Part shown: piece after piece, positions 7,914-48,613 of the stretch
Position numbering within the stretch: the first letter of the stretch is position 1
How the letters are laid out: every line of letters starts with the position of its first letter
Notes under the pieces: model-generated
The model's database searches: none
Seen by the model: only the letters and a program-made list of their open reading frames with translations
Told to the model about the DNA's origin: nothing
Made by a program: the position numbers and the translations under genes
IMG/VR virus record: IMGVR_UViG_3300020122_000238
Span: 211,301-275,300 of that record
Reading direction: 5' to 3' (one strand)
Length of the DNA stretch: 64,000 bases

Positions 7914-8729
7914 ATGTATGACGATGCCTCGCTGGACGATTACTGGGCCATGTTGCGGCCCCCCGAGCCCATGCCGTCCCCTGTGATCTCCCTTGAGACC
8001 GCTACCGAATGGCTGAAAACCATTGGGGCTCCGAGACATTCTCCCCTCTTGGTAGTCCCTGGTACATCTGTGGAGCGTTGCAGCGTTTTTCGGGCTCTGG
8101 GGAAAGTCGTGGACAGCACCTACTTCGAGTGCGACCTGGAAAACGCCTCCTGGTTAGAGGTGGGTCTCGACACGACCATCGCAGCTCTCGTCTCCTGTCA
8201 GGACCTCGATCTGGAGGGCACCATTCGAACGATGGCTGACACGTCCCATTACCTGGAGCATGACGTGTACCGGATTCTCTGGGAAATTCGGTTCTTGCGT
8301 CGTGAAGATCGGCATCAAGCGGACGAGCTGTTCGATATCTTCCGGCGATTGGTCCGTGACACACAACTTCGAGAACATGAGGTTCGGAGGCTCCGGGACC
8401 TTGGCATCTCGAAGTTCATCTTCTCTTTCCGGGAGAAAGTGGAAGTGCTGTGCTTCCTCCGCACCCTCGCCTCTCAGAACGAAATCCCGAGTCGCCTGGT
8501 TCTTTCTTTCGACGGGTTGGACCAGGCCATACAAGCTGAGAACAAGGGGGTTCTTCGCCAGCTCGTGATGCTCATCTCTGAAGTCCGACGTTGGACGCTA
8601 ATCACCAGTTGCCCGATTGGCATCCTCCTGGGTTTTTCAGCGGCCCGAAGTAATACCGCAAAACTCCGCAAGCTCAATCAGAATCTCACCGCCGAAATGG
8701 AGGCCGGGCTCGCCTGGACCAAGTCATGA
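7914..8729 (+). CDS. hypothetical protein with N-terminal acidic-W tag
   Basis: Begins MYDDASLDDYWAMLRPPEP; GGTGTA 10 nt upstream. Confidence 0.75.
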   Translation: MYDDASLDDYWAMLRPPEPMPSPVISLETATEWLKTIGAPRHSPLLVVPGTSVERCSVFRALGKVVDSTYFECDLENASWLEVGLDTTIAALVSCQDLDLEGTIRTMADTSHYLEHDVYRILWEIRFLRREDRHQADELFDIFRRLVRDTQLREHEVRRLRDLGISKFIFSFREKVEVLCFLRTLASQNEIPSRLVLSFDGLDQAIQAENKGVLRQLVMLISEVRRWTLITSCPIGILLGFSAARSNTAKLRKLNQNLTAEMEAGLAWTKS

Positions 8730-9235
8730 TCCGGATCAATTTCACTTGCGATGTTGTCGAACTCGAACCGCTCAACACTGACGAGTACGACGGCCTGCTC
8801 ATGGTGATCTCCACAGCCACCACCCCGATTGGAGGGAATGACCAGGTGAAACATCAGGATACGGCGACGGGGGAATGGGACGACATCCCTGTTTCTGCGG
8901 GGGCCCGCTCAACAGGGGGGTTGGTCTTCCGGGAGCGGCAAGTCACTCTGCCGGGGAAGTACCTGATCCGCTCCGCGATCCGCAATGGGAAAGAGCCCTT
9001 CAGGACTTTCGACCTCTTCCTCGAACATCTGGGAGACCGAAATGCCCGCCTCACGGTCGAGCCTGGAAGCACCCTTGCGTTCTGGATCATGGGCAACTTC
9101 GACCCGATCTTGATCGGTGCAGAGCGTACGATCATTCACATCGAGAATGGGCAAATCACGTTGATCGACACAGGGAAGCCGAGCGATCAGCGCCGTCCGA
9201 CCGCCTGGGAGAAAATGGACGACGACGACATCTAG
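8726..9235 (+). CDS. hypothetical protein with C-terminal PTAW-acidic tag
   Basis: Ends RRPTAWEKMDDDDI; ATGA-coupled. Confidence 0.8.
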   Translation: MIRINFTCDVVELEPLNTDEYDGLLMVISTATTPIGGNDQVKHQDTATGEWDDIPVSAGARSTGGLVFRERQVTLPGKYLIRSAIRNGKEPFRTFDLFLEHLGDRNARLTVEPGSTLAFWIMGNFDPILIGAERTIIHIENGQITLIDTGKPSDQRRPTAWEKMDDDDI

Positions 9236-9238
9236 CTC

Positions 9239-9859
9239 TTGGTGTCCATAGAAGGGATGCCCCCTCGTCACCATCAACTAGACCCCCAAAGTGGAATGGG
9301 TATGAGCCCTCCGCACTGCCTCGTCTGTCGGGCCAGCTTCAACCCCAACGAGCCGCTCACCTCATGCGACCATATCTCGATCGACGACCTGAAGATCCAG
9401 ACAGTCTACGACATCGACATGGACGAGAAGCCCATCGGCATGGGGCTCTCGGGGGAGTGCTTCAACCTGAAGTGCCCCGACTGCAAGCAGACCTTCATGC
9501 AGCTCCGCAAGTCCATGCACGGGCTCTTCTATGGGTGCCCTTCCTACCCCGCGTGCAAGGGCACTCACGGGGCCAATGCGGACGGCGCTCCGAAGGGCAT
9601 CCCTGGAGACTTCGCGACCCGTCAGGCCCGTATAGCGGTTCACCTGGTCTTCGATCGTATATGGAATCAACCTGGCTCCAACCTGACCCGAATCCAGGCC
9701 TATACCTGGATGGCTTGGGAAATGAGGCTGGGAATCATGGAAGCCCATATCGCACGCTTCGACATTGAAATGTGCGAGAAGCTCGTCTCCCTGGTGAAAA
9801 AACACTTCGGGGTCACGAACGCGTGGGAAGCCATCCTCGACGACTCCATCTGGGATTGA
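9239..9859 (+). CDS. topoisomerase C4 zinc-finger / DUF3268-like protein with C-terminal tag
   Basis: CPDC...FYGCPSYPAC, RQARIAVHLVFDRIW, AYTWM, HIARFD..C; ends TNAWEAILDDSIWD; exact start uncertain. Confidence 0.7.
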   Translation: MVSIEGMPPRHHQLDPQSGMGMSPPHCLVCRASFNPNEPLTSCDHISIDDLKIQTVYDIDMDEKPIGMGLSGECFNLKCPDCKQTFMQLRKSMHGLFYGCPSYPACKGTHGANADGAPKGIPGDFATRQARIAVHLVFDRIWNQPGSNLTRIQAYTWMAWEMRLGIMEAHIARFDIEMCEKLVSLVKKHFGVTNAWEAILDDSIWD

Positions 9860-9883
9860 CGTCGTAAGACGCTACCCCGAAGG

Positions 9884-10108
9884 ATGGGTCCCCCAACAGC
9901 GTTTGCCGGGGGTTCATTTTGCGCCCGCGGACCCATGCGTCTTATCGACGGACCCTACGGCCGGTTCTACGGCTGCAAGCACTGGCCTGACTGTGTGTCT
10001 CGAATTCCGGCCGAGTATGACGGTACGCCGAAGTACCCGAAAAAGAAGCTGCCCCGAAGTCATTCGCGGGGCAGCTTCTTTCGGACGACTTCGACTAGTC
10101 GTTGGTGA
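9884..10108 (+). CDS. possible small C4 zinc-finger fragment
   Basis: MRLIDGPYGRFYGCKHWPDC resembles the upstream finger. Confidence 0.35.
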   Translation: MGPPTAFAGGSFCARGPMRLIDGPYGRFYGCKHWPDCVSRIPAEYDGTPKYPKKKLPRSHSRGSFFRTTSTSRW

Positions 10109-11953: not shown

Positions 11954-11983
11954 TCCCGGTCGCCCACTTGCTGTAGGTGAAAC

Positions 11984-12223
11984 ATGGACCGTCGAACCAA
12001 CTACGAAGATCGCACCATCCGTCGTCTGACCCGCATCATGTACCCCAAGTACGTGGAGGTCATGAAGAAGGGGGTGGCGCAGGGTGACATCTGGACCCTG
12101 AACGTCTCTGGGAAGAATGTCCTCGCCATCATCGGCGACGGAAACATCACCGTGATGGCGGATGGCGGGGGCTTCCGCCAGGTGGGCACCCCCAAGCGCA
12201 GCAAGTACACCCCCATCTTCTGA
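11984..12223 (+). CDS. hypothetical protein
   Basis: Class A motif at 11950-11975; strong codon bias. Confidence 0.75.
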   Translation: MDRRTNYEDRTIRRLTRIMYPKYVEVMKKGVAQGDIWTLNVSGKNVLAIIGDGNITVMADGGGFRQVGTPKRSKYTPIF

Positions 12224-12227
12224 CCCC

Positions 12228-12443: not shown

Positions 12444-12446
12444 TCT

Positions 12447-12911: not shown

Positions 12912-12914
12912 ACG

Positions 12915-13658
12915 ATGCCTACCCCTGACGACGACATCCTCAAAGAGTACTGGGAAGACCTACAGGTTGGGCCGGTCCCGGACCCCACCCTCCCGAGCTT
13001 CTACGGGAAGCATCCTGGAGACCTGGTCATCGGGACATCCAAGGATCGGATCCTTGTTCGGATCCACCCCGACGGCACTCTGACCTATGGCCCGGACTAC
13101 ACGCCGGATGAAGCTGCGGTCGAGTTCTGGACGCAAATGTGCGTTCGTCGTATGGAGTCTGAAGAGCGGGTGATGCACCTCGGAGTCGTCGAGTCGATGC
13201 TCATTCGCATGGGGAACGCCGACCTCAACTACGAGGGCCGACAGAGGCAAGCTCAAGCCGAGGGCGCGACAGACCACGATCGCTTCCAAGCGGAGATGGC
13301 CCGACGCAACCTCGAAGCCATCGTTCACCAGACGATCGAATTCGGACGTGGCCTGGTCGCTCGTCCGGATGCTCCGGCTCCCATCGTGCCTGAACCTGCC
13401 CCCTCGGACGTGGACGGTCCTCCGGTCGATTACGAGCAGTATTCGTCCCCCATCGCGGATCCCCCTCCGACTCCGCGACCCTCGGCGAACCTTCAAGATG
13501 CGTGGAACATGATGAGCAACAGGCTCGAAGAGGCCGCAGCTCGTCGCCCCGTGGAGCACAGGCGAGCCCCTGGGTTTGGCAATGGCGTCGGGCCTTGTGT
13601 GTGTGGCGCTGCCTGGGATTTCAGGCAGCGTCGATGTTCGACCAGGAATTCTGGTTGA
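12915..13658 (+). CDS. hypothetical protein with N-terminal acidic-W tag
   Basis: Begins MPTPDDDILKEYWEDLQVGPVPDP. Confidence 0.75.
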   Translation: MPTPDDDILKEYWEDLQVGPVPDPTLPSFYGKHPGDLVIGTSKDRILVRIHPDGTLTYGPDYTPDEAAVEFWTQMCVRRMESEERVMHLGVVESMLIRMGNADLNYEGRQRQAQAEGATDHDRFQAEMARRNLEAIVHQTIEFGRGLVARPDAPAPIVPEPAPSDVDGPPVDYEQYSSPIADPPPTPRPSANLQDAWNMMSNRLEEAAARRPVEHRRAPGFGNGVGPCVCGAAWDFRQRRCSTRNSG

Positions 13659-13681
13659 GCGGATCAATCGAGTCGAAGATC

Positions 13682-16198: not shown

Positions 16199-17008
16199 AT
16201 GGCCACCGTAATCGCCCAATGCAAGAGCTGTCATCAGATGATCTATTGGGAGGACCACATCGCCGGAGCGTGTTCCTGCCCTGAAGGCTCCTTGCGTCAG
16301 CTTCTCGCGCAGAAGCAACGTCGGCCGGCAACAATGGCTCGAACCGCGAGCCAAGCTCCAGTTCGTCAACAACTTCCGGACCTTACCCCCGAGATGCTCC
16401 TATCGAGCAGTGCCCTCCGAGAAATGCGAGCGGCCGAGGGCCACACGCATCGGATGCCTGCTCCTCGGCCTCCCCGAAATGAGGACAGGAACGCCTATCG
16501 GCGTGAGTATGCCGCCTCCTTCGACTCCGAGGATGAGCCCGCTGAAGACCCGGCGGCGTCCCTGGGGAGCCTGGAGGACATCTGGGGAGGGGCTGTGGCG
16601 AGGGATACCGGACGGCGAGGGAGCCTCGACATCGACTTCTCGACCGGGGAGCTGGATTACGAACCGCCTGTGCAGCAAGCACGGCCTTCGGGCATGGGAG
16701 CCGCCAGCCTTCCTCGCTTCAATGTCACCCGTCCTCCGGTGGATCAGACCGCGTTCCGCCGAGAGCTGGTCGGGGCCAACATGCGTGAGATCGGCCGGAC
16801 CCGAAACGGGCAGGTGATCTTCTCCGATCGGAGCACCCGCTCGGTTGATGAGCCCGCGCCTCGCCCCAGCTTCATCGAGCACACCTCCAGGACGGTGCCT
16901 GCCTCGCAAGCAAACGCCAGAACGGCCGCGATTCGAGCCGCGGAGCATGCGAAGCTCCCGACGGCGTTCGAGGTTCTACAGAGGCCCTTCCTCGAAGACG
17001 ACGACTGA
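16199..17008 (+). CDS. hypothetical protein (N-terminal Cys cluster, disordered) with C-terminal tag variant
   Basis: CKSC...CSC; ends LPTAFEVLQRPFLEDDD. Confidence 0.75.
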   Translation: MATVIAQCKSCHQMIYWEDHIAGACSCPEGSLRQLLAQKQRRPATMARTASQAPVRQQLPDLTPEMLLSSSALREMRAAEGHTHRMPAPRPPRNEDRNAYRREYAASFDSEDEPAEDPAASLGSLEDIWGGAVARDTGRRGSLDIDFSTGELDYEPPVQQARPSGMGAASLPRFNVTRPPVDQTAFRRELVGANMREIGRTRNGQVIFSDRSTRSVDEPAPRPSFIEHTSRTVPASQANARTAAIRAAEHAKLPTAFEVLQRPFLEDDD

Positions 17009-19864: not shown

Positions 19865-20347
19865 ATGCCTAAGCTCGACAAGAAACTCCGCCTGGAAGTC
19901 GCACAGACCGTGCTCGATGGGGGGTCCGTCCTCTTCCTCACTCCGAACTCAGAAATGAATGACCGGGTTGCGGACCTCTTCAGGAAGGCATTCGTGGAGA
20001 ACGCCATGGATGTCACAGGCTGCGCGGAACTCACCGCCCGCAAGCTCATGAAGCCCGAAGGCGCAAATCCGAGCTATGTCCAGCTCGCGAAAGGCCCCGG
20101 GCATGCCTTCTTCCACCCGAACCAGGACATGACCGCCGACGAAGAGATCGGGAACCCCACCTTCGTCTACTGGCCGACCGAGGGCGGGGACTACCAGAAG
20201 GTGCCCTATAACACATGGAAGCGAGAGCGTCGGGCTCACCTCTGGCGGCCGGTTCACCTGAAGGGACAGCTCCTTTGGGAAGACACGCCGGCTGTGATTG
20301 CGGGCCCGTCGAATGCGTGGGCCAAGATCCTGGAGGATGACCTGTGA
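19865..20347 (+). CDS. hypothetical protein with C-terminal tag
   Basis: Ends GPSNAWAKILEDDL; GGTGTA upstream. Confidence 0.8.
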   Translation: MPKLDKKLRLEVAQTVLDGGSVLFLTPNSEMNDRVADLFRKAFVENAMDVTGCAELTARKLMKPEGANPSYVQLAKGPGHAFFHPNQDMTADEEIGNPTFVYWPTEGGDYQKVPYNTWKRERRAHLWRPVHLKGQLLWEDTPAVIAGPSNAWAKILEDDL

Positions 20348-20580
20348 CCCCAAGCGAGATGAAGCTGGCGGGCATTCTCCTGGAGATGGCGGCCGACGAG
20401 TTCGGCAATCACAGCTGCAACGACTTCAAGTTGCCACCGATGCCGGAGACAGCCGTGCTCACCCTCCTCACGGAGTACTACGCCCCGGATCCGATCCCTG
20501 AGCTTCAGAGCCCCATCCTCAACGACGCCATCCTCATGTCGATGATGGCCAAGAAGCTCCTGGTGGATGCCGGGCCATGA
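20344..20580 (+). CDS. hypothetical protein
   Basis: Coupled ORF. Confidence 0.7.
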   Translation: MTPSEMKLAGILLEMAADEFGNHSCNDFKLPPMPETAVLTLLTEYYAPDPIPELQSPILNDAILMSMMAKKLLVDAGP

Positions 20581-21002
20581 GCACGACGGCATGGGACCTG
20601 ATCCTGAACGATTTCGATGAAATCGAAGACCGGATCACGGCGGCCTGCCTCGCCTGCAAAGCCCGAGGGATTGTTGTCCAGTCTGGCGACTGGGGCGTCA
20701 CCTATGACGAAGACACCCACAAGTGGGTCCAGGGTACACCTTGGCGGGAGAGCACCTCTCTCCCTGTGAATCTCCTCGGCGCCTTGTTGCTCATCGAGAA
20801 CCCTTTCCCCGAGATGTACGTGTACGAGAACCGCACATGTTACGCGCCCACCGACACGGTGAGTAGACTTTTGGGCGTTGGGATCGCCTGGACTCTCTCA
20901 TTCTTCGCGGGGTGGGATGCAGCTCGGTTCCCCTCTTCGGGAGTCAGGACCGCCTATGACTTCGGGCAGCGGTTGGCAACAGAGATTTCATGTCCTCTGT
21001 GA
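20577..21002 (+). CDS. hypothetical protein with TAW-acidic tag at N-terminus
   Basis: Begins MSTTAWDLILNDFDE. Confidence 0.7.
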   Translation: MSTTAWDLILNDFDEIEDRITAACLACKARGIVVQSGDWGVTYDEDTHKWVQGTPWRESTSLPVNLLGALLLIENPFPEMYVYENRTCYAPTDTVSRLLGVGIAWTLSFFAGWDAARFPSSGVRTAYDFGQRLATEISCPL

Positions 21003-22409: not shown

Positions 22410-22709
22410 TCAGAAGTCTTCGTCTTCTTTTAGCAACCGCTCATGCCACGTCCGAATTTTTTGAGCCCGAAGTCTGGCGAGGGGGCTAGGAAACAGAACA
22501 TCATACCCACGCAACTCACTCCGGAATGGCCCTCTGTAGCCTTCTTTGAAGATGACACGAATTCTAAATGAGTCCCTCGTAAAAATGGACTCCAACACGG
22601 CTTCAACCATCGAATCAGAACGGAAAAGAGAGACAATATGACGGAAACGAGTTTTCTCCTCAATCGTGAAGGTAGGGAACTCCAAGTCCCAAACGACTTG
22701 ATTAGACAT
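22410..22709 (-). CDS. hypothetical protein (AT-rich) with C-terminal tag
   Basis: Ends IRTWHERLLKEDEDF. Confidence 0.7.
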   Translation of the reverse strand: MSNQVVWDLEFPTFTIEEKTRFRHIVSLFRSDSMVEAVLESIFTRDSFRIRVIFKEGYRGPFRSELRGYDVLFPSPLARLRAQKIRTWHERLLKEDEDF

Positions 22710-22710
22710 A

Positions 22711-23106
22711 TCAGTCCTCCAGGATGGCATCCCAAACCGTGGGACCCTTCAAAGAATGAAACTGGTTGATAAAGTTTACCCATGAAGTAATTCGGAATTG
22801 TCTTGAATCATCGTGACTATAAGACAGCCAGCCATTTTTGATGGTCATAACGGAGACCATGTTTTTAAAATGTGTGGGATCCTTGTCTACAAAAACGGCG
22901 TCATGGTGTACCCAATGAGGAACGGGGGTGCCTTCATATTTCGGATGGAAAGGCGACCAAAAACGCTCAACTCTCTCAAGAGAAGTACATCCTGGTCGAC
23001 TCTCCCCCACGGCCAAAAGCCAGAGCCCATTGTCCGAGAAAGCCACGACCTCCGCCCAATACCCGGGCCCCTCAAGTTCCAACCAATCCCCAATTTCGTA
23101 GGCCAT
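22711..23106 (-). CDS. hypothetical protein (AT-rich) with C-terminal tag
   Basis: GGTGTA-N9-ATG; ends GPTVWDAILED. Confidence 0.7.
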   Translation of the reverse strand: MAYEIGDWLELEGPGYWAEVVAFSDNGLWLLAVGESRPGCTSLERVERFWSPFHPKYEGTPVPHWVHHDAVFVDKDPTHFKNMVSVMTIKNGWLSYSHDDSRQFRITSWVNFINQFHSLKGPTVWDAILED

Positions 23107-24367: not shown

Positions 24368-24733
24368 TTATACGTCGTCGCCATCAAGATGCTCCCAAAC
24401 CGTGGGGTTGGTCTCTGGCAGCTTCGGTTGAGCTTGCGCCATCGGGGGCAGAGTTGTTCTCAGAACGAGGCTCAGAAGCTCTGAATCACCCCGCGGTCGA
24501 GCTTGTGCCTGAAGCTGGGCTCGTAGCTCCCTGCGTTCTCGGATGATCCTCTCCAGGACCTCGACGGAGTTCTCGTCGCTGTCTTCCGCGTACCTTTGCA
24601 GACGTTCCGTGAGCTGCTTGAGGAGGACTGCATCTTCAGACTCCGTGTGAACGTAGGCAAGGAGCTTGCCTACGCCAATTGCTATCGCAATGAGCAGCAC
24701 CGCGAGACCAAGGGTAACAATGAAAGCGATCAT
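24368..24733 (-). CDS. membrane-anchored coiled-coil protein with C-terminal tag
   Basis: N-terminal TM, coiled coil, ends NPTVWEHLDGDDV. Confidence 0.8.
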   Translation of the reverse strand: MIAFIVTLGLAVLLIAIAIGVGKLLAYVHTESEDAVLLKQLTERLQRYAEDSDENSVEVLERIIRERRELRAQLQAQARPRGDSELLSLVLRTTLPPMAQAQPKLPETNPTVWEHLDGDDV

Positions 24734-27486: not shown

Positions 27487-27635
27487 TGTTTCCCGAGTTA
27501 CCTTTGAAAGGTGTACAATGTAGGCAAAAATGGCCTCGTTGAGGTTCTCCCTTCTATACACCGGGGAGCCCTGGGGGTAAAACAGGGCTCCCCGCACGTC
27601 GACCTAGAATACAAATTGCCGGTGTATAGGCCAAC

Positions 27636-28025
27636 ATGTCCGACGACGACTTGGAAGAATACTGGGAGGTCAGTGTCCTCCCTCCCCGCCCTCCTGGTCT
27701 TCTCCAACCTTTGGGCCCTCCGGAAGGATCTGGAGGGCCTCTCTATATTTTTGGAAAGGCCTCTGTGCTCTATTTGGAGGTAGGGGCCGCAAATTGCGAG
27801 CGCTTTGGAGACCGGCAACCCATTACGATGACCCCCGTATCTGACACAGGGGGCACGCAATGGCGACTCAGCCCGGAATTCCGATTTACACGATCAGCAC
27901 TCATCTCAAGGTTCGATCTTTGGGATAATCCAAGCGGCGGGCGCAAGCTATACACCTCTGACTTCGAGCCTCTCAACGTTGGCCCTGAGTATACATTCAC
28001 CTTCCACCTGAATATTAAAATTTGA
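27636..28025 (+). CDS. N-tagged protein with degenerate tail-fibre-like domain (paralog of 33924)
   Basis: MSDDDLEEYWEVSVLPPRPP; LWDNPSGGRKLY. Confidence 0.7.
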   Translation: MSDDDLEEYWEVSVLPPRPPGLLQPLGPPEGSGGPLYIFGKASVLYLEVGAANCERFGDRQPITMTPVSDTGGTQWRLSPEFRFTRSALISRFDLWDNPSGGRKLYTSDFEPLNVGPEYTFTFHLNIKI

Positions 28026-28940: not shown

Positions 28941-29497
28941 AACGCTGGGATCCTGACATCGAGGATTACATCGACGAGACGAATGGCGAGGAGCCGGATA
29001 TCGAAGACGATATCCGCTTCAAGCTCGATATGGTCGAGATGATCCGTACCGAGTTGGGAGACAAGAAAGCAGCTTTGGCTCAAACCACGCTGAAGATCCC
29101 CGAGCTGGACTATTCTATGTCCTTCCACGTCGGGATGTGGCTGCGCCATGCTGAAGACGAAGTAACCAGAGTTCGTCTCGAAATATTGGAGGTTCGAGAC
29201 GAAACCTGTCTCGTCTACTGCGTCGGGTGGGAGGAGCCGACTGAGAAAACAAAGAAGATACTCTGTTGGTATAGAATATCTGAACCCCCCTCGACGGCTC
29301 TGCCATCTTGGGTGAAGCCGGGTGCGTACTTCGGCAGCAATTCTCGCAACAGATGGTGCATTCTTACCATCAAAGAGGGCATGTTCACAGCGAAGCGTAC
29401 ACGCGATCAGTACTTCGCCACCTGGACATCAGAGGACCTGTTCGACGAGTGCCGTCCCATCCTCACGGCATGGGAACAGCTCGACGACTTGGGATAG
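28937..29497 (+). CDS. hypothetical protein with C-terminal tag
   Basis: Ends ILTAWEQLDDLG. Confidence 0.75.
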   Translation: MKRWDPDIEDYIDETNGEEPDIEDDIRFKLDMVEMIRTELGDKKAALAQTTLKIPELDYSMSFHVGMWLRHAEDEVTRVRLEILEVRDETCLVYCVGWEEPTEKTKKILCWYRISEPPSTALPSWVKPGAYFGSNSRNRWCILTIKEGMFTAKRTRDQYFATWTSEDLFDECRPILTAWEQLDDLG

Positions 29498-29814: not shown

Positions 29815-30387
29815 ATGTTGACGAAGAAGATCCTGACGGCGACGAAGCATTACCTGAGCAAGACCCCCGAAGAGAACCGCGCCTATGGCCTGGTTACGGA
29901 TGGGAAGATCAACCCCGGCACCTTCCGCTTCATGCCGGTGCTGGCGTGGCTTCGCAAGAAGCCCGAGAGGAGCAGGATTGTCCTCTCGGGCTTCTTGCTG
30001 CGCATGACGGAAGGTGCTTTCGTGGGAGGCCTCGACTGGTCCATCCCGCTGAACCCGGAAACCGAGAACGACGCCGCGAACCTTCTCTCGTCCTTCGGGT
30101 GGGACAATCGAGTGTGGCCTTCAGACCCGGGCTGGCCCGACGATCTGCCGGATGAGGAACACACGCTGCACGGGATGCTCAAGAAGAAGGGCATCTTGGA
30201 GACGCTCACGTTCCCGCCGAAGGAATCGGGCAACAGGGTGATGACGCTTCATGTGCTGAAGGTGTCGAACCCCTTCCCGCTGCCGATCCTGGTTGCTGAT
30301 GAAGACCGTCAGGAGGTGGCCCCCGAGATGCTCTCGAAACTTCGAGAGCTGGTCGCCGACCCGAGCTGCTTCTCGCTGTCCTCCTAG
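29815..30387 (+). CDS. hypothetical protein
   Basis: GGTGTA-N10-ATG. Confidence 0.75.
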   Translation: MLTKKILTATKHYLSKTPEENRAYGLVTDGKINPGTFRFMPVLAWLRKKPERSRIVLSGFLLRMTEGAFVGGLDWSIPLNPETENDAANLLSSFGWDNRVWPSDPGWPDDLPDEEHTLHGMLKKKGILETLTFPPKESGNRVMTLHVLKVSNPFPLPILVADEDRQEVAPEMLSKLRELVADPSCFSLSS

Positions 30388-30977
30388 TCGTCCGCGAGAA
30401 GGTGCCCCCACGCGTTGTCAGGTCTACCTTTGGGCCCTCTCGTCCGAAGCAACCTGACAATGGGGAGATCGGCTGCCGCAGCCAGGGAATCATCCAGCTC
30501 CCTGGTTGCGATGGAGCACTGGTCGATGTGGTGCGCGGGATTTGAGATGTCCCGCACCGTGATGAGCCACACCCCCTTCTTCTTCTGAATGTAGACCCCA
30601 GCCCGCCAGGTGTTCATGACCTTCGTGTTGGGGTCTTGGGCTCCCGTGGCGACATCGAATGGCTCTGGGATCAAAGCCATCGTGTTCTCCGTCTCACGGT
30701 AGAGATGTTTCCCGAAGGGCCGTCGCGTGTACTCCGTGCTGATCTGGTTCAGCGGAATTTGAGTCTCATGGCAGACAGTATCCCACCGCGTAAGAATTCC
30801 CCCAGGCACGAGAGTGGTGATTGGCCCTGTAGTTCTTGACCCGTGGGGGGTCGTCAGGTCAGGCCGCCAGGTCACGATCCCATCAACCTCGGAGGTCTTC
30901 AGCGATCGAATCACAACATGACCGGGGCACATGTCCCCCAAAATCATGACAGGCTTCTGCATCAGGACAAGGATCAT
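30384..30977 (-). CDS. hypothetical protein with C-terminal tag
   Basis: Ends PDNAWGHLLADD; GGTGTA-N10-ATG. Confidence 0.7.
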   Translation of the reverse strand: MILVLMQKPVMILGDMCPGHVVIRSLKTSEVDGIVTWRPDLTTPHGSRTTGPITTLVPGGILTRWDTVCHETQIPLNQISTEYTRRPFGKHLYRETENTMALIPEPFDVATGAQDPNTKVMNTWRAGVYIQKKKGVWLITVRDISNPAHHIDQCSIATRELDDSLAAAADLPIVRLLRTRGPKGRPDNAWGHLLADD

Positions 30978-31011: not shown

Positions 31012-31731
31012 ATGGGATCGACCCCCAAAAAGACCCCTGTGAAGTACCACTCCTGGTGGACCGAGAAAGCCGTACCTCATCGGAACATGTTGATGGTGAG
31101 GTACGACTACGGGCACTCCAGGGTCGATAGATCCTTGTACGGATGTCTGGTCGTCGGAGACGACCAGACGCTCCTCTGGCTCAGCAGTGAGGAGATCCGG
31201 GAAAAGTGGAAGCCCTTCCGCGTACCCTTCTCGGCAGTTATTCCTCTGGGGGTGTGGCCCCAGTGGGTGACTCGACGAGATGTCCAATGGCACACAGCGC
31301 CAGACCATCCTCGGCGAATGACCATCGTCTCGTACAAGCCCAAGAGCTTCTGGCTTGCAACCACCACCGTGGTCGAGCCCTTCGAGGGCCCAAGATTCCA
31401 AGTCTACAGAGCAACGCAGAGTTTCAAGGTTGATCACGAGATGGTGCAATACGGGGACCATCTCACCCTCGATAGAGACTACAACGTGTGGACCGTGCGT
31501 AAGAAGAGCATCGCTCGGTTCTGCAACCGGGAGATCACAGCCTTCCTTGCTATGCAATACCTCATCCCCGTGATTCAACCGAGCGGGATGCCCTTCGATT
31601 GGAGCATTCAGAAGTTCACCACACGCTTCTGGAGTCTCCACACTTTCGCTCAGAACCATCGGCCTCTGATGCCCTCAAAACCGACCGCTTGGGACGTTGT
31701 GATGGCCGACGAATTCGAGGAAATGGTGTAG
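31012..31731 (+). CDS. hypothetical protein with C-terminal tag
   Basis: Ends KPTAWDVVMADEFEEMV. Confidence 0.75.
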   Translation: MGSTPKKTPVKYHSWWTEKAVPHRNMLMVRYDYGHSRVDRSLYGCLVVGDDQTLLWLSSEEIREKWKPFRVPFSAVIPLGVWPQWVTRRDVQWHTAPDHPRRMTIVSYKPKSFWLATTTVVEPFEGPRFQVYRATQSFKVDHEMVQYGDHLTLDRDYNVWTVRKKSIARFCNREITAFLAMQYLIPVIQPSGMPFDWSIQKFTTRFWSLHTFAQNHRPLMPSKPTAWDVVMADEFEEMV

Positions 31732-32286: not shown

Positions 32287-32608
32287 AATGTGGGCTGGGG
32301 GGCCCCTCTACCCTGACTGGTTGGTCATCAACCAACTCGTTGAGACGACGGCAAGACACCCAGGGATACGACAACAATCAGTCATTACCAGGATCACTGA
32401 CGGGTTGGTGTACGTCCGATCAAATACCGGCATCGGAGATATTTGGTATCGAGCAGAGCACTTCGTGGACGAATGGCGGGTGCTTCATACCCCCCTGAAG
32501 AACGATCTCGCTCCCGAGGACTACAGGTGGGAGCCCAAGCCTGTCGAGCCCCCCAAGCCCGCTCCGACGTGGCATGAGCTCCTCATTGACGATGACTTCG
32601 ACATCTAG
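32276..32608 (+). CDS. hypothetical protein with C-terminal tag
   Basis: Ends APTWHELLIDDDFDI. Confidence 0.75.
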   Translation: MPPRMWAGGPLYPDWLVINQLVETTARHPGIRQQSVITRITDGLVYVRSNTGIGDIWYRAEHFVDEWRVLHTPLKNDLAPEDYRWEPKPVEPPKPAPTWHELLIDDDFDI

Positions 32609-32633
32609 TCGAAGTCATCGTCAATGAGGAGCT
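32577..32633. repeat. 26-bp perfect inverted repeat encoding the same C-terminal peptide in two convergent genes
   Basis: AGCTCCTCATTGACGATGACTTCGAC-ATCTA-GTCGAAGTCATCGTCAATGAGGAGCT. Confidence 0.95.
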
Positions 32634-33321
32634 GCTCCCAGGCAGTGGGCCAGAAGATGTGGACCCTGGGGGTGGCCGGAGGGGGAGGGGGCTGCGTCGG
32701 CACCCCGGGAAGGTACCTCCCCATCAGAGAGGGGGTCTCGGTCGGATCGAACTCCGGGACTTCAACTCGACGTCGCATGTTTTCCAAAGCCCGCGTGTTG
32801 AAGACCATGTCCCCAACGTGTTCGTGAGCCGTTAACCCCTCGCCGGAAATCCGATCCATGGCGTCGAAGACCCGCTGGTCCTCTTCCTCTCGAAGACGCT
32901 CTTGCGCGAACATCTCTCGTGTCCTCACAACATCCTGCCACACAGTATTAGGGGCAACCTGCACGAAGGAGGGCGTAAACTCCTCTCGGAAAACCGAGTA
33001 CCTGGGGTCAGGAGAGGGTTCTCCAATCCCGTAGACGTTGCGGAACGTTTCTTGGGAGACGCACAGATCCACGTGGACCATACGCTCCATGATCTCCATT
33101 TCCTCCGATAGGTTGAGGGATGAGGGCAGCAAAGGAAGCAACTGTATGGGGGGTGCCGGTAGGATGGGGAGCGCCGGTAGGACCGGTAGGATGGGGAGCG
33201 CCGGTAGGACCGGTAGGAGCCCCATCCTCCTGATCACTTCATTCGCACGCTCACGTATGTCTTGGAGCACCAGATGCTCCAGAACTCGCCGGATGAGAGG
33301 GACACCATCACGAGGGGGCAT
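32605..33321 (-). CDS. hypothetical protein with Pro/Leu repeat and C-terminal tag
   Basis: Ends WPTAWEQLLIDDDFD; GGTGTA-N9-ATG. Confidence 0.75.
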   Translation of the reverse strand: MPPRDGVPLIRRVLEHLVLQDIRERANEVIRRMGLLPVLPALPILPVLPALPILPAPPIQLLPLLPSSLNLSEEMEIMERMVHVDLCVSQETFRNVYGIGEPSPDPRYSVFREEFTPSFVQVAPNTVWQDVVRTREMFAQERLREEEDQRVFDAMDRISGEGLTAHEHVGDMVFNTRALENMRRRVEVPEFDPTETPSLMGRYLPGVPTQPPPPPATPRVHIFWPTAWEQLLIDDDFD

Positions 33322-33362
33322 GGAGAGCCCTACACCACCTTTCCGCGGTGTAGGGCAGGAAG

Positions 33363-33836
33363 ATGGCTGACGAAGATCCGGATGATTTGAGCGCGGACTG
33401 GAAACTGATCGGAGGACCTCCGCCTCCTCCCGAAGAACCCCCTCCGATCAGTGCAACCGAAGCCATCGAGCGCATGGTGATGGCTTCGGTTCAGTACTTG
33501 GCCATCCTATCGGCAAGGGTGGAAAAGTCCCCATCCATCACCATACAGGTGCATCACAAGAAGGACGCAGAGGGGCAAATCGTCACGACCTGGTCTGCCC
33601 AATACCGCTCCGAGTCGAACCCAGCCATCAGCCTGGTCCCCAGTACGCAGTTCCCCACCATCGACGAAGCCGTTGAGAGCTTGCATAGCAACATGGCTAC
33701 CATGCTCTCGAATCAGTTGAGAGCATGGCAAAAAGAGGCGGCCTCGCACCAACAGCAGATGGAGGAGAAGTTCAAGATCGCTTCCTCCATCGCTACGATC
33801 TTGGGGAATTTAGGGGTTCCGCAGACGAAAGTCTAG
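33363..33836 (+). CDS. hypothetical protein with N-terminal acidic-W tag
   Basis: MADEDPDDLSADWKLIGGPPPPP; GGTGTA-N10-ATG. Confidence 0.75.
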   Translation: MADEDPDDLSADWKLIGGPPPPPEEPPPISATEAIERMVMASVQYLAILSARVEKSPSITIQVHHKKDAEGQIVTTWSAQYRSESNPAISLVPSTQFPTIDEAVESLHSNMATMLSNQLRAWQKEAASHQQQMEEKFKIASSIATILGNLGVPQTKV

Positions 33837-33923
33837 CCTTACAGGCTACGTCTGTGTTACCCTCGCCTCGAAACCCTGCCAGATCAGCGCGATCTAGGGC
33901 AAAGCCGGTGTATAGGAGTACTC

Positions 33924-34349
33924 ATGAGCGAAGACCTGTATGATTTGGACAGCTATTGGGAGTTGAGGGTTCTACCTCCTCGGCCTCCCGAACCTGAGAT
34001 CGAAGCAGCGCCAGAACCCATTCAAGAACTCACTTTCACTCCGAGGGGAGTGTACTTGGGCCTATTCACAGCCCTACCCCAAGACACCAATGAGGGTGTG
34101 GAGCTTACCGATACCAGATACGCTCGCGCATCTGTGAATCCCAGATTCACATCAAACAGTAGGGGGGAATCGGTAGCTGAGATCACACACCGATTCCCCC
34201 CTATGAGCACTCCCGTGGTTGTGATGGGTGGGGGTCTTTGGGATGCCCCTGTGGGGGGCAATCTCCTCTACTTTTCAAGCCTAGCCGTGAATCTCCGCGT
34301 CGACCTCGGAATGAACGCGGAGATTCACCTCACCGTCTCTGCTGACTAG
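33924..34349 (+). CDS. N-tagged protein with phage tail-fibre-like domain
   Basis: MSEDLYDLDSYWELRVLPPRPP; YLGLFTA.P...E...YAR...GLWDAPVGGNLLY. Confidence 0.7.
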   Translation: MSEDLYDLDSYWELRVLPPRPPEPEIEAAPEPIQELTFTPRGVYLGLFTALPQDTNEGVELTDTRYARASVNPRFTSNSRGESVAEITHRFPPMSTPVVVMGGGLWDAPVGGNLLYFSSLAVNLRVDLGMNAEIHLTVSAD

Positions 34350-41823: not shown

Positions 41824-42227
41824 TACAATCCGCTCTCCTGGGGGGTCTTGCGCACACGGGCCTTGGTCATGCTGAGCGCAGCATGACTCACGGTATCCTT
41901 GCCCAAGACCTTGAACTCGTGATCCACGATGAGCAACCCCACCCGGTTGTCCCAGCCGATGGAAAAACGGTAGAGCCAGGCGTCATCGACCTTGAGGATG
42001 GTCTTCAGATGAGTCCAGGCTTGAGCGCTTTTGGCCAGATCGAAAGCCCACAGGACAGCGCCCAGAGCGGTACATCGAACGGGGACATTCTTGTCCAACC
42101 CCGTCCAATCGAACATCGCTCCACGGTCGAGCTGGATCCCTTGAGCTTCGGCCGTGTCGCACGCTTCCCCGATGATCTGGAGGGCCGGCTTCCGAGGCGG
42201 GACATAGAGAACGTTCAGTTCAATCAC
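41823..42227 (-). CDS. hypothetical protein
   Basis: GTG start 11 nt after GGTGTA. Confidence 0.7.
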   Translation of the reverse strand: MIELNVLYVPPRKPALQIIGEACDTAEAQGIQLDRGAMFDWTGLDKNVPVRCTALGAVLWAFDLAKSAQAWTHLKTILKVDDAWLYRFSIGWDNRVGLLIVDHEFKVLGKDTVSHAALSMTKARVRKTPQESGL

Positions 42228-42900
42228 CTTTTGGGTTTACACCGAATTCGGGGGAATCGAGCTGGTCCCAAGATGTTGGACGTCGATTGTACTCCGCCTC
42301 AGCCCGACGGCGCTTTTTCTCTTCTCGACGCCGGACCTGGTCATCGGTGAGAGACGGAGTATTTGCAGCTTGAAGCTCGACGCCATCAACCCAAGGGGGG
42401 CGTTGGGGCGTATATTCCTCAAGAACCACGTCAACCGCAAAAGACAGCGTTGCAACCTGTACTTCTCTTGGGGTTCTTTCGGCGGAACCAGCGAAGTTCA
42501 CCTCGAAGGGACCATCTTGCCGTTCTTGCAGGATGGTAAAGGCATCCTGAAATAAAGTGATATCTCTTTCGATGATGGTGTGTGTACCCCCCAAAATGTG
42601 TACTCCAAACCTGTCAATGGAAGAGACCATTGACAGGTTACATACAAGTCCAGCTTGTCGGAGCTGTCGGCTGGCTTCAAAAGGAGAAATAGGCACTACT
42701 ACTTCCGACACTGGAGCAGGCTGCGGCGGAGGAGACCAACCATGGGGCTTGCGAATCACCCGCGTGAGCACCCCGTTCTGCTCTGAGAAGGCCTGGCTGC
42801 TTTGAATCGCCTCGTGCTCATGCACAGAAGCGAGAGACGGAAGGTCAACCCACCCGGCACGGGCCGCACGAGACTGGACGCAGTAGAAGCGAGAAGGCAT
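42220..42900 (-). CDS. hypothetical protein with near-C-terminal tag
   Basis: RRPTSWDQLDSPEF; GGTGTA-N10-ATG. Confidence 0.75.
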   Translation of the reverse strand: MPSRFYCVQSRAARAGWVDLPSLASVHEHEAIQSSQAFSEQNGVLTRVIRKPHGWSPPPQPAPVSEVVVPISPFEASRQLRQAGLVCNLSMVSSIDRFGVHILGGTHTIIERDITLFQDAFTILQERQDGPFEVNFAGSAERTPREVQVATLSFAVDVVLEEYTPQRPPWVDGVELQAANTPSLTDDQVRRREEKKRRRAEAEYNRRPTSWDQLDSPEFGVNPKGD

Positions 42901-46881: not shown

Positions 46882-46890
46882 AAGGGGGGC

Positions 46891-47298
46891 TTACACCGGG
46901 TCGTTGATCCCCAACGCGGCCCTCTCTGCCGAATCGAGCTTGGCGAGTGCTCTCTGACGCACCTGCTCCACGGACATGATGCGAGGCAGCACAATGACCG
47001 GCTCCCCGATCTTGATGATGTGCCCGACCATTCCCTCATCCAACAAAACGCGGACCGAACGGACAAATCCCGTACCCCCAGCCACACCTCTGCCCCGCGC
47101 AAATTCCAGCGCCGTGCTCTCATCTTCGGTGACGCAAATGTGGTAGGTCCCCTGGGTTGCGGGGGTACGGCATCCACGTACCTCGAAGGCGTCGATGATA
47201 CGCACAAGATGTGGGAGCGGAGGAGGGGGGGGCAGAATGGTCATGGAGGATGGGGGGGAGACCTCTGTCTCTCGGTCTGAATAATCTTCGTCCAACAT
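46891..47298 (-). CDS. hypothetical protein
   Basis: GGGAGGA Shine-Dalgarno; acidic then Pro-rich N-terminus. Confidence 0.7.
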   Translation of the reverse strand: MLDEDYSDRETEVSPPSSMTILPPPPPLPHLVRIIDAFEVRGCRTPATQGTYHICVTEDESTALEFARGRGVAGGTGFVRSVRVLLDEGMVGHIIKIGEPVIVLPRIMSVEQVRQRALAKLDSAERAALGINDPV

Positions 47299-47391
47299 AA
47301 ATCCTCCCTGTACCCTACACCCAAGACAGAAAATCCTGGACGTCGAATTTCTAACACAGCCAAAAAGTCTGGCATGGTGTAAAATAAACCC

Positions 47392-48135
47392 ATGAGCGTC
47401 AACGACATTTACAGGGACTACCTTCGAGCGGCTTCCAGGACCAACGAAACCGTCTACCTCCGCAAGGTATATGCGTGGTTGACTGTGGGCCTGATGCTCA
47501 CATCCGGCGCGGCTTGGTACTCCTTGACGGGCTTTGGTGAGAGGCTCCTGGTTCAGGGCGACAAGCAGGCGATGGTCCCGAACCTCGTCGCCGACATGGA
47601 GGCGCATCCCTTCATGGCCATCGGGATGTTCTTCGCCCTCGGCCTCGGAGCCATGATCTTCAGCCGTACGAAGGGGCTGAACGCGGTGCTCTTCTTCAGC
47701 TTCTCGGCGTTCTCGGGGGCCTTTATCGGGCCGTCACTCTTCATCGCCCAGCTCTCCGCGAGCCACGGCCACACGCTCAGCCCGAATCCCATCCTCCATG
47801 CTGGGGTGCTCACCGTGAGTGCCTTCGTCGGGCTCACCACCTACGTCTTGACGACGCGGAAGGACTTCTCCGCCTGGGGGGGCTTCTTGATGTCTGGGCT
47901 CTTCGTTCTCATCGCGGCTGGCATCCTTGGGCTCTTCGTCCAGGCTGAGGTCTTCCACCTGGCCGTTGCAAGCGCGGGTGTCTTCATCTTCCTCGGGTAC
48001 ATCCTCTATGACACGTCGAAGATTCTCCTGAAGTCGGACTACAGCGATCCGATCGGGGACGCGTTGAACCTCTACCTGGACGTCCTCAACCTCTTCCTGA
48101 ACTTGCTGCGGATCTTCGCCTCGTCCAAGGACTGA
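47392..48135 (+). CDS. Bax inhibitor-1 / YccA family membrane protein
   Basis: YLRKVY, seven TM segments, RKDFS, YILYDTSKI, ALNLYLDVLNLFLNLLRIF. Confidence 0.9.
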   Translation: MSVNDIYRDYLRAASRTNETVYLRKVYAWLTVGLMLTSGAAWYSLTGFGERLLVQGDKQAMVPNLVADMEAHPFMAIGMFFALGLGAMIFSRTKGLNAVLFFSFSAFSGAFIGPSLFIAQLSASHGHTLSPNPILHAGVLTVSAFVGLTTYVLTTRKDFSAWGGFLMSGLFVLIAAGILGLFVQAEVFHLAVASAGVFIFLGYILYDTSKILLKSDYSDPIGDALNLYLDVLNLFLNLLRIFASSKD

Positions 48136-48138
48136 GTC

Positions 48139-48613
48139 ATGGAAGACGTCGACCTGGACTCCGATTGGGCCGTTTTGAAGGGAGAGCCGGACAGGCTCTC
48201 CCTTCGTGGCGACAGGCGATTGGGACAAGCCCAGCGCGATCTGGCTCGTCGAGTGTACAGGCAGTACTAAAGAGTGCTGGCACATCGCGAACCCCAAGCT
48301 GGTATGGGTCGAGTCCAGCCCTCTCTTGGACACGCCCAAAAACGCGGAGTACATTCGCCGATACCATCTCGGGGGTGTGCAAACCACAACAGGGCGTTGT
48401 AGCAAGGATTCAGCTACGTTCACTATGGCAGAGGCGCACACCCTGATTCGCCGGAGTCGAGTCGGGCATCTGAATCGTATCAAAGAAGAGATCAAGACGG
48501 TTGAGATCGAGCAGGAAAGAGCGCTGCTCTTTCTGGAGTGGGCTCGCAATCGAGCCCGCGAGATCGTCGATGACCTCGAAGGTAACCCGTACCGCTCTTC
48601 CCCACCTCCCTAA
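48139..48613 (+). pseudogene. N-tagged hypothetical gene with apparent +1 frameshift near 48197
   Basis: MEDVDLDSDWAVLKGEPDRL; +1 frame continues PFVATGDWDKP... to 48613. Confidence 0.55.

Follow-up and report, generated by a model that had tools for sequence, protein, structure and literature searches.

In large myoviruses, the closest described system is the T4 capsid targeting sequence (CTS), a short conserved terminal peptide that is the only feature shared by a hypervariable set of small accessory or anti-defence proteins (PMC3012670). Two motif classes are formally similar. LIR/AIM motifs, a eukaryotic system that binds Atg8-family proteins, consist of a Θ-x-x-Γ core (W/F/Y ... L/I/V) flanked by acidic residues, lie in flexible regions often at protein termini, and recruit many unrelated proteins to one ubiquitin-like receptor (PMC12582063). 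SUMO-interacting motifs carry an acid block on either side of a hydrophobic core, SIMa being core then (D/E/S)3 and SIMr being (D/S/E)3 then core, and they bind one groove in parallel or antiparallel orientation (PMC3395311). Encapsulin cargo-loading peptides and microcompartment encapsulation peptides are short terminal peptides on flexible linkers that, from either terminus, address unrelated cargo to one shell protein. The acidic-Trp motifs of WASP-family proteins (C-terminal) and cortactin (N-terminal) bind Arp2/3, their partners being actin-related proteins, and combine an acidic stretch and one conserved Trp with adjacent proline-rich regions.

Here, we analysed a 64,000-nucleotide window of an uncultured jumbo phage (IMGVR_UViG_3300020122_000238, positions 211,301 to 275,300), together with the rest of its contig (G000, 58% complete) and its clade relatives (designated by G numbers, and Tunturi_5). 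Nine otherwise unrelated proteins begin with a short acidic, tryptophan-containing peptide on a proline-rich tether (N-type). It looks like the N-terminal form of a putative docking tag (C-type when C-terminal) carried by about a tenth of the phage's proteins.

An acid–tryptophan peptide opens nine unrelated proteins

A sequence-only reading had listed six N-termini of this kind, and a seventh gene (20577) with the C-type tag at its N-terminus. This observation is confirmed and extended: all seven translate exactly as listed, and three more members were found, at window 51320 (MPSDEEYSREDW..PPPG), genome 206646 (MAEIDDMWDLL..PSPAPP) and genome 93923(-) (MDDDLESYW..PPRP). The consensus is M-[DE]3-4-L-[DE]2-[YF]-W-x-x-Φ followed by a Pro-rich linker. 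The features within the window are collected in Table 1.

We then examined whether the starts were correctly assigned and whether the motif was enriched, since either point could have overturned the observation. In most of these genes, the ATG is the first start codon after an in-frame stop 1-4 codons upstream. Five of the nine N-type starts, four in the window and genome 93923(-), are marked independently by a GGTGTA element 9-11 nt upstream. This element precedes about 60 gene starts at this spacing, 37 of them at exactly 10 nt. The 6-residue core [DES][LIV][DEKSYQ][DESAV][YFDMW]W has 9 six-frame matches in the genome, of which six (plus 48139) lie within 16 residues of an in-frame ATG that opens an ORF, whereas in the tag-poor or tagless relatives G001, G002 and Tunturi_5, 0 of 3-4 matches do. 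A looser motif hits 9 genes against 1.85 expected (P = 1.4e-4), and 500 composition shuffles gave a mean of 1.4 and a maximum of 7. The motif is therefore specific to gene starts. BLASTP similarity between tagged proteins is confined to the termini, indicating that the bodies are unrelated.

The ORF at window 48139 encodes only 43 aa. Comparison with the intact 164-aa ortholog in G006 (MEDDVDLDSDWAILKGEP...) revealed one extra base near window 48203 in this assembly. The tag is real, but the gene is frameshifted here.

Table 1. Tags, linkers and upstream elements in the 64,000-nt window (window coordinates).
Position	Strand	Feature	Sequence	Gene and remarks
3174..3206	+	C-type core near the N-terminus	NAWEALMADDD	Residues 18-28 of gene 3123-4037
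7897..7903	+	Upstream element	CGGTGTA	10 nt before the ATG at 7914
7914..7991	+	N-type tag plus Pro-rich linker	MYDDASLDDYWAML-RPPEPMPSP	Gene 7914-8729 (271 aa); body resembles AAA_16/KAP/BrxC-like P-loop proteins
9182..9232	+	C-type tag	PTAWEKMDDDDI	Gene 8726-9235
9800..9856	+	C-type tag	NAWEAILDDSIWD	Gene 9239-9859 (DUF3268/Zn-ribbon); tag kept in homologs down to 34% identity
12849..12908	+	C-type tag	PTTWHSKLLDDGDD...	Gene 12447-12911
12915..12998	+	N-type tag plus linker	MPTPDDDILKEYWEDL-QVGPVPDP	Gene 12915-13658; G005 ortholog (39% identity) keeps an N-type tag (MPSEDDKSELEVFW); G001 ortholog has lost the W part
16958..17005	+	C-type variant, F in place of W	PTAFEVLQRPFLEDDD	Gene 16199-17008; G001 homolog has W
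20294..20344	+	C-type tag	NAWAKILEDDL	Gene 19865-20347; G001 ortholog (28% identity) keeps the tag
20577..20621	+	C-type core in C-type orientation at the N-terminus	MSTTAWDLILNDFDE	Gene 20577-21002
22413..22472	-	C-type tag	RTWHERLLKEDEDF	ORF 22410-22730(-); tagged homolog in G005
22714..22758	-	C-type tag	TVWDAILED	ORF 22711-23445(-); coding strand unresolved, a + strand ORF scores better
24371..24421	-	C-type tag	PTVWEHLDGDDV	Gene 24368-24733(-)
27620..27626	+	Upstream element	CGGTGTA	9 nt before the ATG at 27636
27636..27710	+	N-type tag plus linker	MSDDDLEEYWEVSV-LPPRPP	Gene 27636-28025
29447..29494	+	C-type tag	TAWEQLDDLG	Gene 28937-29497
30387..30416	-	C-type tag	NAWGHLLADD	Gene 30384-30977(-)
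31666..31728	+	C-type tag	PTAWDVVMADEFEEMV	Gene 30931-31731
32546..32605	+	C-type tag	PTWHELLIDDDFDI	Gene 32237-32608
32608..32664	-	C-type tag	PTAWEQLLIDDDFD	Gene 32605-33321(-)
33346..33352	+	Upstream element	CGGTGTA	10 nt before the ATG at 33363
33363..33446	+	N-type tag plus linker	MADEDPDDLSADWKLI-GGPPPPPEEPPP	Gene 33363-33836
33906..33912	+	Upstream element	CGGTGTA	11 nt before the ATG at 33924
33924..34004	+	N-type tag plus linker	MSEDLYDLDSYWELRV-LPPRPPEPE	Gene 33924-34349; body (residues 39-131) is a gp80-like small fiber domain (PF23140); paralog of the untagged structural gene at genome 54801-55184
42223..42294	-	C-type-like tag	PTSWDQLDSPEF...	ORF 42220-42900(-); G006 ortholog 66% identical
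48139..48213	+	N-type tag	MEDVDLDSDWAVLKGEP	Frameshifted gene; body continues in the next frame as ORF 48206-48613
50794..50844	+	C-type tag	RTAWFVLDNDDF	Gene 50665-50847
51320..51400	+	N-type tag plus linker	MPSDEEYSREDWMRG-VPPPGTAPVVPP	Gene 51320-52039; G006 ortholog 93% identical
56768..56827	-	C-type-like tag	TAWERLDKDLSDIW	ORF 56765-57013(-); weak coding score; G006 has a matching tag
63706..63756	-	C-type tag	PCWVVLLEDDL	Gene 63703-63960(-)

Relation between the N-type and C-type tags

The sequence-only reading regarded the N-type as the reverse of the C-type tag, and proposed that one receptor groove accepts the peptide from either terminus or that there are two related address systems. 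This interpretation is partly supported. The two tag types are related: N-type tags were found only in genomes rich in C-type tags (G000, G006 and G005), and are absent from G001 (few C-type tags) and from G002 and Tunturi_5 (none). Both sit on unrelated small accessory proteins through Pro-rich linkers, with 31% Pro in N-type and 13.5% in C-type linkers, against 5.7% in the proteome. The acid block does face the free end in each type, as claimed, and at the consensus level the blocks lie on opposite sides of the core.

The backward-reading comparison is not supported as argued. Scoring N-type residues outward from W against the C-type profile did not beat order shuffles (363 of 2000 reach it); this likeness is mostly composition. 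By contrast, the same-direction core W-E-x-L is order-specific (7 of 2000). Moreover, the C-type cores near the N-termini of the 20577 and 3123 genes show that a free C-terminus is not required. No ortholog pair swaps an N-tag for a C-tag. One G005 protein of about 575 aa carries both a weak N-type and a C-type tag, so the two may not be redundant.

Distribution of the tags in the clade

The tag system is accessory. Strict C-tag counts are 24, 15 and 28 in G000, G006 and G005, respectively, against a background of 4-9 in G002, Tunturi_5 and G001, even though the major capsid protein is over 90% identical across the clade. No tagged protein has a homolog in the tagless genomes. The tag is kept in orthologs at 28-40% identity (about 39% for the N-type) while the bodies diverge, indicating that it is under selection.

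In the relatives, we also observed a cluster encoding a ubiquitin-like protein, JAB, ThiF-E1 and vWA, which co-occurs with the tags in the most complete genomes. ThiF is present in G001, G005, G006 and G008, all of which have tags, and absent in G002 and Tunturi_5, which have none. Next to ThiF lies a conserved 86-aa protein ending RPKTPFG[A/S], which is predicted to fold as ββαββ (pLDDT 90.6). Its structure hits are weak, and the named ones are mostly ubiquitin-like/β-grasp domains. This co-occurrence is a lead rather than a result: the cluster is not on the present contig, which is 58% complete, the incomplete contigs G004 (tags but no ThiF) and G009 (ThiF but no tag hits) are discordant, and 36 gene families share the same presence/absence pattern over five genomes.

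A putative docking motif

With moderate confidence, we interpret the N-type peptide as the N-terminal form of a clade-specific short linear docking motif. What the analysis shows is its anatomy: a hydrophobic core W-x-x-Φ, usually preceded by Y or F, with L at W-4; a block of 3-4 acidic residues on the side of the free end; a Pro-rich tether that holds the peptide away from the folded body; and bodies that are unrelated and evolve fast. The C-type tag (P-T-A-W-E-x-L-L-x-D-D-D-Φ-COOH) has the same forward core, with the acid block on the other side. The docking itself, the receptor and the gathering of proteins are inferred. In this view, both forms would dock into one hydrophobic two-pocket site with a basic rim on a shared, phage-encoded receptor, itself accessory rather than part of the core virion. 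Docking would bring together at one place about 35 small, fast-evolving accessory proteins, about 10% of the genes, including an ArdC-like anti-restriction protein in a relative, Zn-ribbon and HTH DNA binders, a degenerate P-loop protein and a fiber-domain paralog. The leading receptor candidate, on co-occurrence alone, is the ubiquitin-like protein/JAB/ThiF-E1/vWA cluster, although the ubiquitin-like protein is net acidic by our count on its sequence.

Both tag types fit the LIR/AIM pattern, but no Atg8-family protein is known here, and the candidate β-grasp protein in the relatives lacks the N-terminal helices of Atg8. SIMa and SIMr are the formal analogue of C-type against N-type. However, the SIM core is aliphatic (I/L/V/M) without the invariant Trp, and there is no SUMO here. 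The T4 CTS is N-terminal only, no sequence likeness to it was established, and its receptor is the core scaffold, whereas here the tag system is absent from a relative with a nearly identical capsid protein. The encapsulin and microcompartment peptides show no sequence likeness and are not acidic-Trp motifs, and no shell other than the capsid is known here. As for the WASP and cortactin motifs, this phage also encodes an actin-like protein, but so do tagless relatives.

Alternative explanations

It is possible, though only tentatively supported, that the N-type binds a different receptor or site from the C-type, the likeness being only a shared taste for acidic and aromatic residues. The flanking conserved positions differ (D-L-[DE]-x-Y-W against P-T-A-W-E-x-L-L), the N-type adds its own conserved [VL][LF]PPRP stretch in three members, and orthologs show no N-to-C swaps. 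G001 keeps C-type tags but has no N-type, and the G005 protein with both tags fits two receptors as well as one. The shared order-specific forward core, the strict co-occurrence of the N-type with abundant C-type tags and the tolerance of C-type cores at N-termini argue against this reading. Capsid or virion targeting remains a live but doubtful rival, in which the tags would load accessory proteins into the prohead or onto the virion for delivery with the DNA, as the T4 CTS does for internal proteins, and may be cut off by the prohead protease. One N-tagged protein is a paralog of a virion fiber-domain protein (PF23140, phrog_240 'head protein'), a gp80-like paralog in phage A1002 has 30 extra N-terminal residues that are missing from the virion map (PMC13730344), the ArdC-like protein carries a C-type tag in G006, and the phage has a head maturation protease of 495 aa. 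However, G002 has a major capsid protein that is 91% identical, yet it has no tags and none of the tagged cohort, making a core capsid receptor unlikely. No protease site is evident, and tagged genes share the GGTGTA-N10-ATG element with ligase, helicase and other non-structural genes, whereas few virion genes have it.

Mimicry of a host hub such as a replisome, RNA polymerase or protease, with tagless relatives infecting other hosts, appears unlikely. Acidic tails ending in a hydrophobic residue recall SSB-type tails, several tagged bodies are nucleic-acid binders (Zn ribbon, KOW, HTH, ArdC-N), and GC content ranges from 53% to 64% across the clade, suggesting different hosts. Nevertheless, the tag consensus is nearly the same in G000 (59% GC) and G005 (64% GC), no host is known, and the tags matched no curated motif family. 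Docking onto the actin-like filament, as the ParR C-terminal helix binds ParM, is very unlikely. The genome encodes a conserved volactin-family protein (PF25216, E = 8.5e-76), and in G000 the next ORF ends in a C-type tag. This adjacency is not conserved, since G006 and G005 have an untagged ORF there and G001 has none, and the actin-like gene is present in every clade member tested, including tagless G002. A complex prediction of the tag with this protein scored 0.00, which the predictor reports as 'no answer'. Finally, three members (27636, 33924 and genome 93923(-)) share a longer module and a similar upstream GGTGTATAGG, suggesting one ancestral cassette. That the motif as a whole is a chance or compositional pattern, or a leftover of one duplicated N-terminal domain, is largely refuted by its enrichment and restriction to gene starts, and is also at odds with the unrelated bodies and its conservation across orthologs in three genomes.

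Genomic context of the tagged genes

The window forms the last 64 kb of a single 275.3-kb contig with about 59% GC, hereafter G000. The contig carries a portal, a head maturation protease, a major head protein, a baseplate-J protein, a family-A DNA polymerase, ribonucleotide reductase, an NAD ligase and an intein-bearing gene, and it is therefore an uncultured jumbo myovirus. CheckV puts it at 58% complete. Its major capsid protein is 90-100% identical to that of at least 586 IMG/VR contigs of up to 529 kb. This 293-aa protein is 92-95% identical between genomes whose other proteins are 40-77% identical, and the contigs that carry it at over 90% identity range from 230 to 530 kb, so the clade is a very large uncultured one with an unusually frozen capsid protein. 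The nearest cultured phage is Tunturiibacter phage Tunturi_5 (48% capsid identity), followed by Bacillus phage G (39%). The intein-bearing gene encodes a 1130-aa protein interrupted by an intein with a LAGLIDADG endonuclease domain.

N-type tags mark the starts of nine genes

All six acidic, tryptophan-containing N-termini listed by the sequence-only reading, as well as the N-terminus of the gene at 20577, translate as described, and its observation is confirmed and enlarged. A six-frame scan added 3 further members, one in the window and two elsewhere in the genome. The aligned consensus is M-x-D-D-D-L-x-x-Y-W-x-x-Φ-...-P-P-x-P-P. The core pattern [DES][LIV][DEKSYQ][DESAV][YFDMW]W occurs 9 times in the six-frame translation. 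Six of these, plus the one at 48139, lie within 16 residues of an in-frame ATG that opens an ORF, whereas none of the 3-4 background matches does so in the tag-poor or tagless relatives G001, G002 and Tunturi_5. A looser definition hits 9 genes against 1.85 expected (P = 1.4e-4), and composition shuffles averaged 1.4. ORFs were called with a crude gene caller of our own, and several minus-strand tagged ORFs remain uncertain. In one such case, a 244-aa minus-strand ORF ending in a perfect C-type tag (TVWDAILED) overlaps a 211-aa plus-strand ORF with the better coding score, leaving the coding strand unresolved.

The ATG of the N-type genes is usually the first start codon after a stop a few codons upstream. 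Moreover, 5 of the 9 N-type starts sit 9-11 nt after GGTGTA. The element, (C)GGTGTA, precedes about 60 genes on both strands at this spacing, 37 of them at exactly 10 nt. These are mostly non-structural and accessory genes, and few are virion genes. No canonical Shine-Dalgarno sequence is visible in the spacer, and the element may be a promoter or start-site element giving very short leaders, or an unusual translation signal. The genome also encodes a conserved 236-aa protein with a sigma-70 region 4 domain, which may be the phage's own sigma-like factor and could relate to the GGTGTA element. A second enriched upstream word, GGTTGATC(C), lies near about 40 genes but at no fixed distance from the start.

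The tagged ORF at 48139 is only 43 aa long in this assembly. Its ortholog in the relative G006 is an intact 164-aa protein with the same tag. Relative to that ortholog, this assembly has one extra base, after which the homologous body continues in a second ORF. It is either a frameshifted gene (a pseudogene) or an assembly error, but it is not a false tag.

Tagged proteins share only their termini

The C-type tag (P-T-A-W-E-x-L-L-x-D-D-D-Φ-COOH) closes about 25 ORFs in this genome, 17 of them in the window. Together with the N-type tags and two N-proximal C-type cores, about 35 of roughly 350 genes are tagged. BLASTP similarity among tagged proteins is confined to the termini. The known bodies are diverse. 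They include a gp80-like fiber domain, which is a paralog of an untagged structural gene, a DUF3268/Zn-ribbon protein, and a protein whose atlas features resemble AAA_16/KAP/BrxC P-loop proteins. In relatives, they include an ArdC-N + M78 anti-restriction-like protein, KOW and an HTH. Linkers next to the tags are Pro-rich, with 31% Pro in N-type and 13.5% in C-type linkers, against 5.7% overall. A search for the tag on the head-module proteins (protease, putative scaffold and portal) found none.

The tags are confined to part of the clade

To assess conservation, five whole relatives were compared. G006 has about 91% nucleotide identity in the core but a different accessory region, and carries about 12 C-type and 4 N-type tags. 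G005 is complete (529 kb, 64% GC) and has about 25 C-type tags with the consensus P-[TS]-[LAV]-W-[ED]-R-[LI]-L-x-[DE]2, as well as an N-type tag on the ortholog of the 12915 gene at 39% identity. G001 has 5 variant C-type tags and no N-type, and its ortholog of the 12915 gene lacks the W part. G002, whose capsid protein is 91% identical, and Tunturi_5 are at background. Being without tags, Tunturi_5 contributed no helpful annotation. Orthologs at 28-40% identity keep their tag type, no N-to-C swap was seen, and none of the tagged proteins has a homolog in the tagless genomes. The tag together with its cohort is therefore an accessory system of part of the clade and is under selection. One G005 protein of about 575 aa carries both labels, starting with a weak N-type motif (MDDLVREWVPLRPGSNP) and ending with a C-type tag (RELWTRLLDDDDVL).

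N-type and C-type tags share a forward core

To examine how the two types relate, their profiles were aligned on W. The C-type has E at +1, L at +3 and +4, D at +5 to +8 and Φ at +9, with A, T and P upstream. The N-type has Y at -1, E at -2/-3, L at -4, D at -5 to -8 and M at -9, and E, x and Φ downstream, followed by Pro. The consensus lines therefore look mirror-like, as the sequence-only reading had argued by reading the N-type tags backwards. However, scoring individual N-tags outward from W against the C-type profile does not beat order shuffles (363 of 2000), so this likeness is not beyond composition. In contrast, the same-direction segment after W does beat them (7 of 2000), because of the shared W-E-x-L. 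We therefore read the two as one forward core with the acid block on whichever side is the free end, and not as retro-peptides. The C-type cores near N-termini show that the free carboxylate is dispensable. Furthermore, three N-type members share a longer module (..YW....[VL][LF]PPRP) and a similar upstream GGTGTATAGG, suggesting that a promoter-plus-tag cassette has moved between genes.

Search for the receptor

The contig encodes an actin homolog of the volactin family (PF25216, E = 8.5e-76), and in G000 the next ORF is tagged, which looks like a parM-parR layout. The gene is a core gene of the clade at 66-100% identity, and some database homologs contain inteins. In the ParR-ParM type of system the adaptor's terminal helix binds the actin-like protein. 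However, the adjacency expected of a ParR-type adaptor tail is not conserved, as the neighbouring ORF is tagged only in G000 and is replaced or absent in G006, G005 and G001. The actin-like gene is also present in all clade members tested, including tagless G002. A complex prediction with two copies of the actin-like protein, a C-tag and an N-tag scored 0.00, a value that by the method's own account is no evidence either way. We rejected the actin-like protein as the favoured receptor.

Presence/absence profiling of gene families gave 23 candidates from G000 and 36 from G005, too many to single one out, and many of them are HNH endonucleases or are themselves tagged proteins. Of two small candidates, an atlas lookup of the product of genome 6653-7087 was uninformative, while 34934-35359 was assessed by inspection only. 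HNH-type homing endonuclease-like genes are scattered in the accessory region, and their presence varies among relatives. A seven-helix membrane protein that looks like a BAX-inhibitor/YccA-type protein by sequence features is conserved in the tag-bearing relatives and was not found in G002.

The profiling did expose a ubiquitin-like conjugation-type cluster in G005. It comprises a 708-aa basic vWA protein, a 365-aa protein with an acidic tail, a weak Prok-JAB match, a conserved 86-aa protein and a ThiF-type E1 (E = 5e-26). The 86-aa protein is 48-62% identical in G001, G006, G008 and G009 (the last two being further relatives), always beside ThiF, and ends in an invariant RPKTPFG[A/S]. In G005 a C-tagged Zn-ribbon ORF is inserted between the ubiquitin-like protein and the E1, and in G006 an HNH endonuclease sits there instead. 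The 86-aa protein is predicted to fold as ββαββ with a pLDDT of 90.6, its weak structure hits are mostly ubiquitin-like and other β-grasp domains, and it belongs to a large unannotated family. ThiF is present in G001, G005, G006 and G008, all with tags, and absent in G002 and Tunturi_5, which have none. Incomplete contigs are discordant, since G000 and G004 (another relative) have tags only and G009 has ThiF only.

Comparison with known docking motifs

Both tag types fit the LIR/AIM pattern Θ-x-x-Γ, in which W/F/Y is followed by L/I/V at +3, with acidic flanks (PMC12582063), the C-type consensus being W-E-x-L-L and the N-type W-[EA]-x-[LIV]. Acid blocks of 3-4 residues flank the core. The tags are terminal and adjoin Pro-rich linkers, from which a flexible, accessible position is inferred. 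LIR/AIM motifs bind the two hydrophobic pockets of an Atg8-family ubiquitin-like protein by β-augmentation. The C/N pair parallels SIMa/SIMr, which bind one groove in either orientation (PMC3395311). The SIM core is aliphatic, (ILVM)-x-(ILVM)2, with an acid block after it in SIMa and before it in SIMr. Here, too, the acid block lies on either side of the core, although the core is centred on Trp rather than being purely aliphatic, so the PROSITE-style patterns quoted in that paper are not literally matched. As in the T4 capsid targeting sequence, a conserved N-terminal peptide is shared by otherwise diverse small proteins. In the T4 type, the tagged proteins are found inside the capsid and the tag is removed by the prohead protease at a consensus site. 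No recurrent cleavage-like motif was seen after the tags in the alignments, although a head maturation protease gene exists. When 10 tag peptides were scanned against Pfam at E up to 10, 0 families matched. We read the tag as a terminal docking motif, a known kind of device, and it differs from SIMs in its Trp-centred core.

Interpretation

The presence of the tags, their distribution and their conservation come directly from the sequences, whereas the receptor, any binding to it and therefore the function are inferred. The proposal of the sequence-only reading, that one groove accepts the peptide from either terminus or that two related address systems exist, is partly supported. On present evidence, the ubiquitin-like cluster is our leading candidate partner, although the link is only a co-occurrence plus an analogy and the cluster is not on this contig. 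In its boldest form, which we consider unlikely but not excluded, the tags would be LIR/SIM-like motifs docking non-covalently onto the phage-encoded 86-aa predicted β-grasp protein. A clade of soil jumbo phages would then run a ubiquitin-like protein-recruitment network for about a tenth of its proteome, and the C-type and N-type tags would be the two orientations of one motif, as in SIMa/SIMr.

Capsid targeting as in T4 (PMC3012670) fits the logic of a conserved tag on hypervariable cargo that may be anti-defence. It also fits the fiber-domain paralog, which may be compared with the unseen 30 N-terminal residues of A1002 gp41 (PMC13730344). However, a relative with a nearly identical capsid protein lacks the whole system, and tagged genes share the GGTGTA element with non-structural genes. 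Two separate receptors, a host hub or the actin-like filament remain possible, while chance is excluded.

A shared address label on about 10% of a jumbo phage's proteins would give a handle on dozens of hypothetical accessory genes at once, since whatever binds the tag defines where and when they act. If the receptor is the phage's own ubiquitin-like system, or the capsid, the tag would also be a ready-made tool for recruiting or packaging foreign proteins, and the N/C pair would be a natural test case for bidirectional motif recognition in a prokaryotic virus.

Coordinates of the tagged genes and of other features discussed in the text
Feature	Sequence	Position	Position in locus
(C)GGTGTA elements, examples	window	7897-7903, 27620-27626, 33346-33352, 33906-33912	
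Added N-type member	window	51320	
Added N-type member	genome	206646(+)	
Added N-type member	genome	93923(-)	
Tagged gene split by one extra base	window	48139-48270 and 48206-48613; extra base near 48203 (48196-48210)	
N-proximal C-type core	window	20577	
N-proximal C-type core, residues 18-28	window	3123-4037	
Tagged gp80-like fiber-domain protein	window	33924	
Tagged AAA_16/KAP/BrxC-like protein	window	7914	
Opposed ORFs, minus-strand one C-tagged	window	22711-23448	
HNH-type homing endonuclease-like genes	window	18053-18565, 28305-28940, 39079-39633(-)	
Seven-helix membrane protein	window	47392-48135	
Small receptor candidates	genome	6653-7087, 34934-35359	
Sigma-70 region 4 protein	G000 genome	23072-23782	L002:3072-3782
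Intein-bearing protein	G000 genome	29680-33072	L002:9680-13072
Major capsid protein	G000 genome	45652-46533	L003:5652-6533
Volactin-family actin homolog	G000 genome	63784-64821	L004:3784-4821
Ubiquitin-like conjugation-type cluster	G005	150.7-155.9 kb	L174 (G005:140001-160000) 10747-15904; also L213-L216
Protein with both N-type and C-type tags	G005	98227-99950(-)	spans L171 and L172
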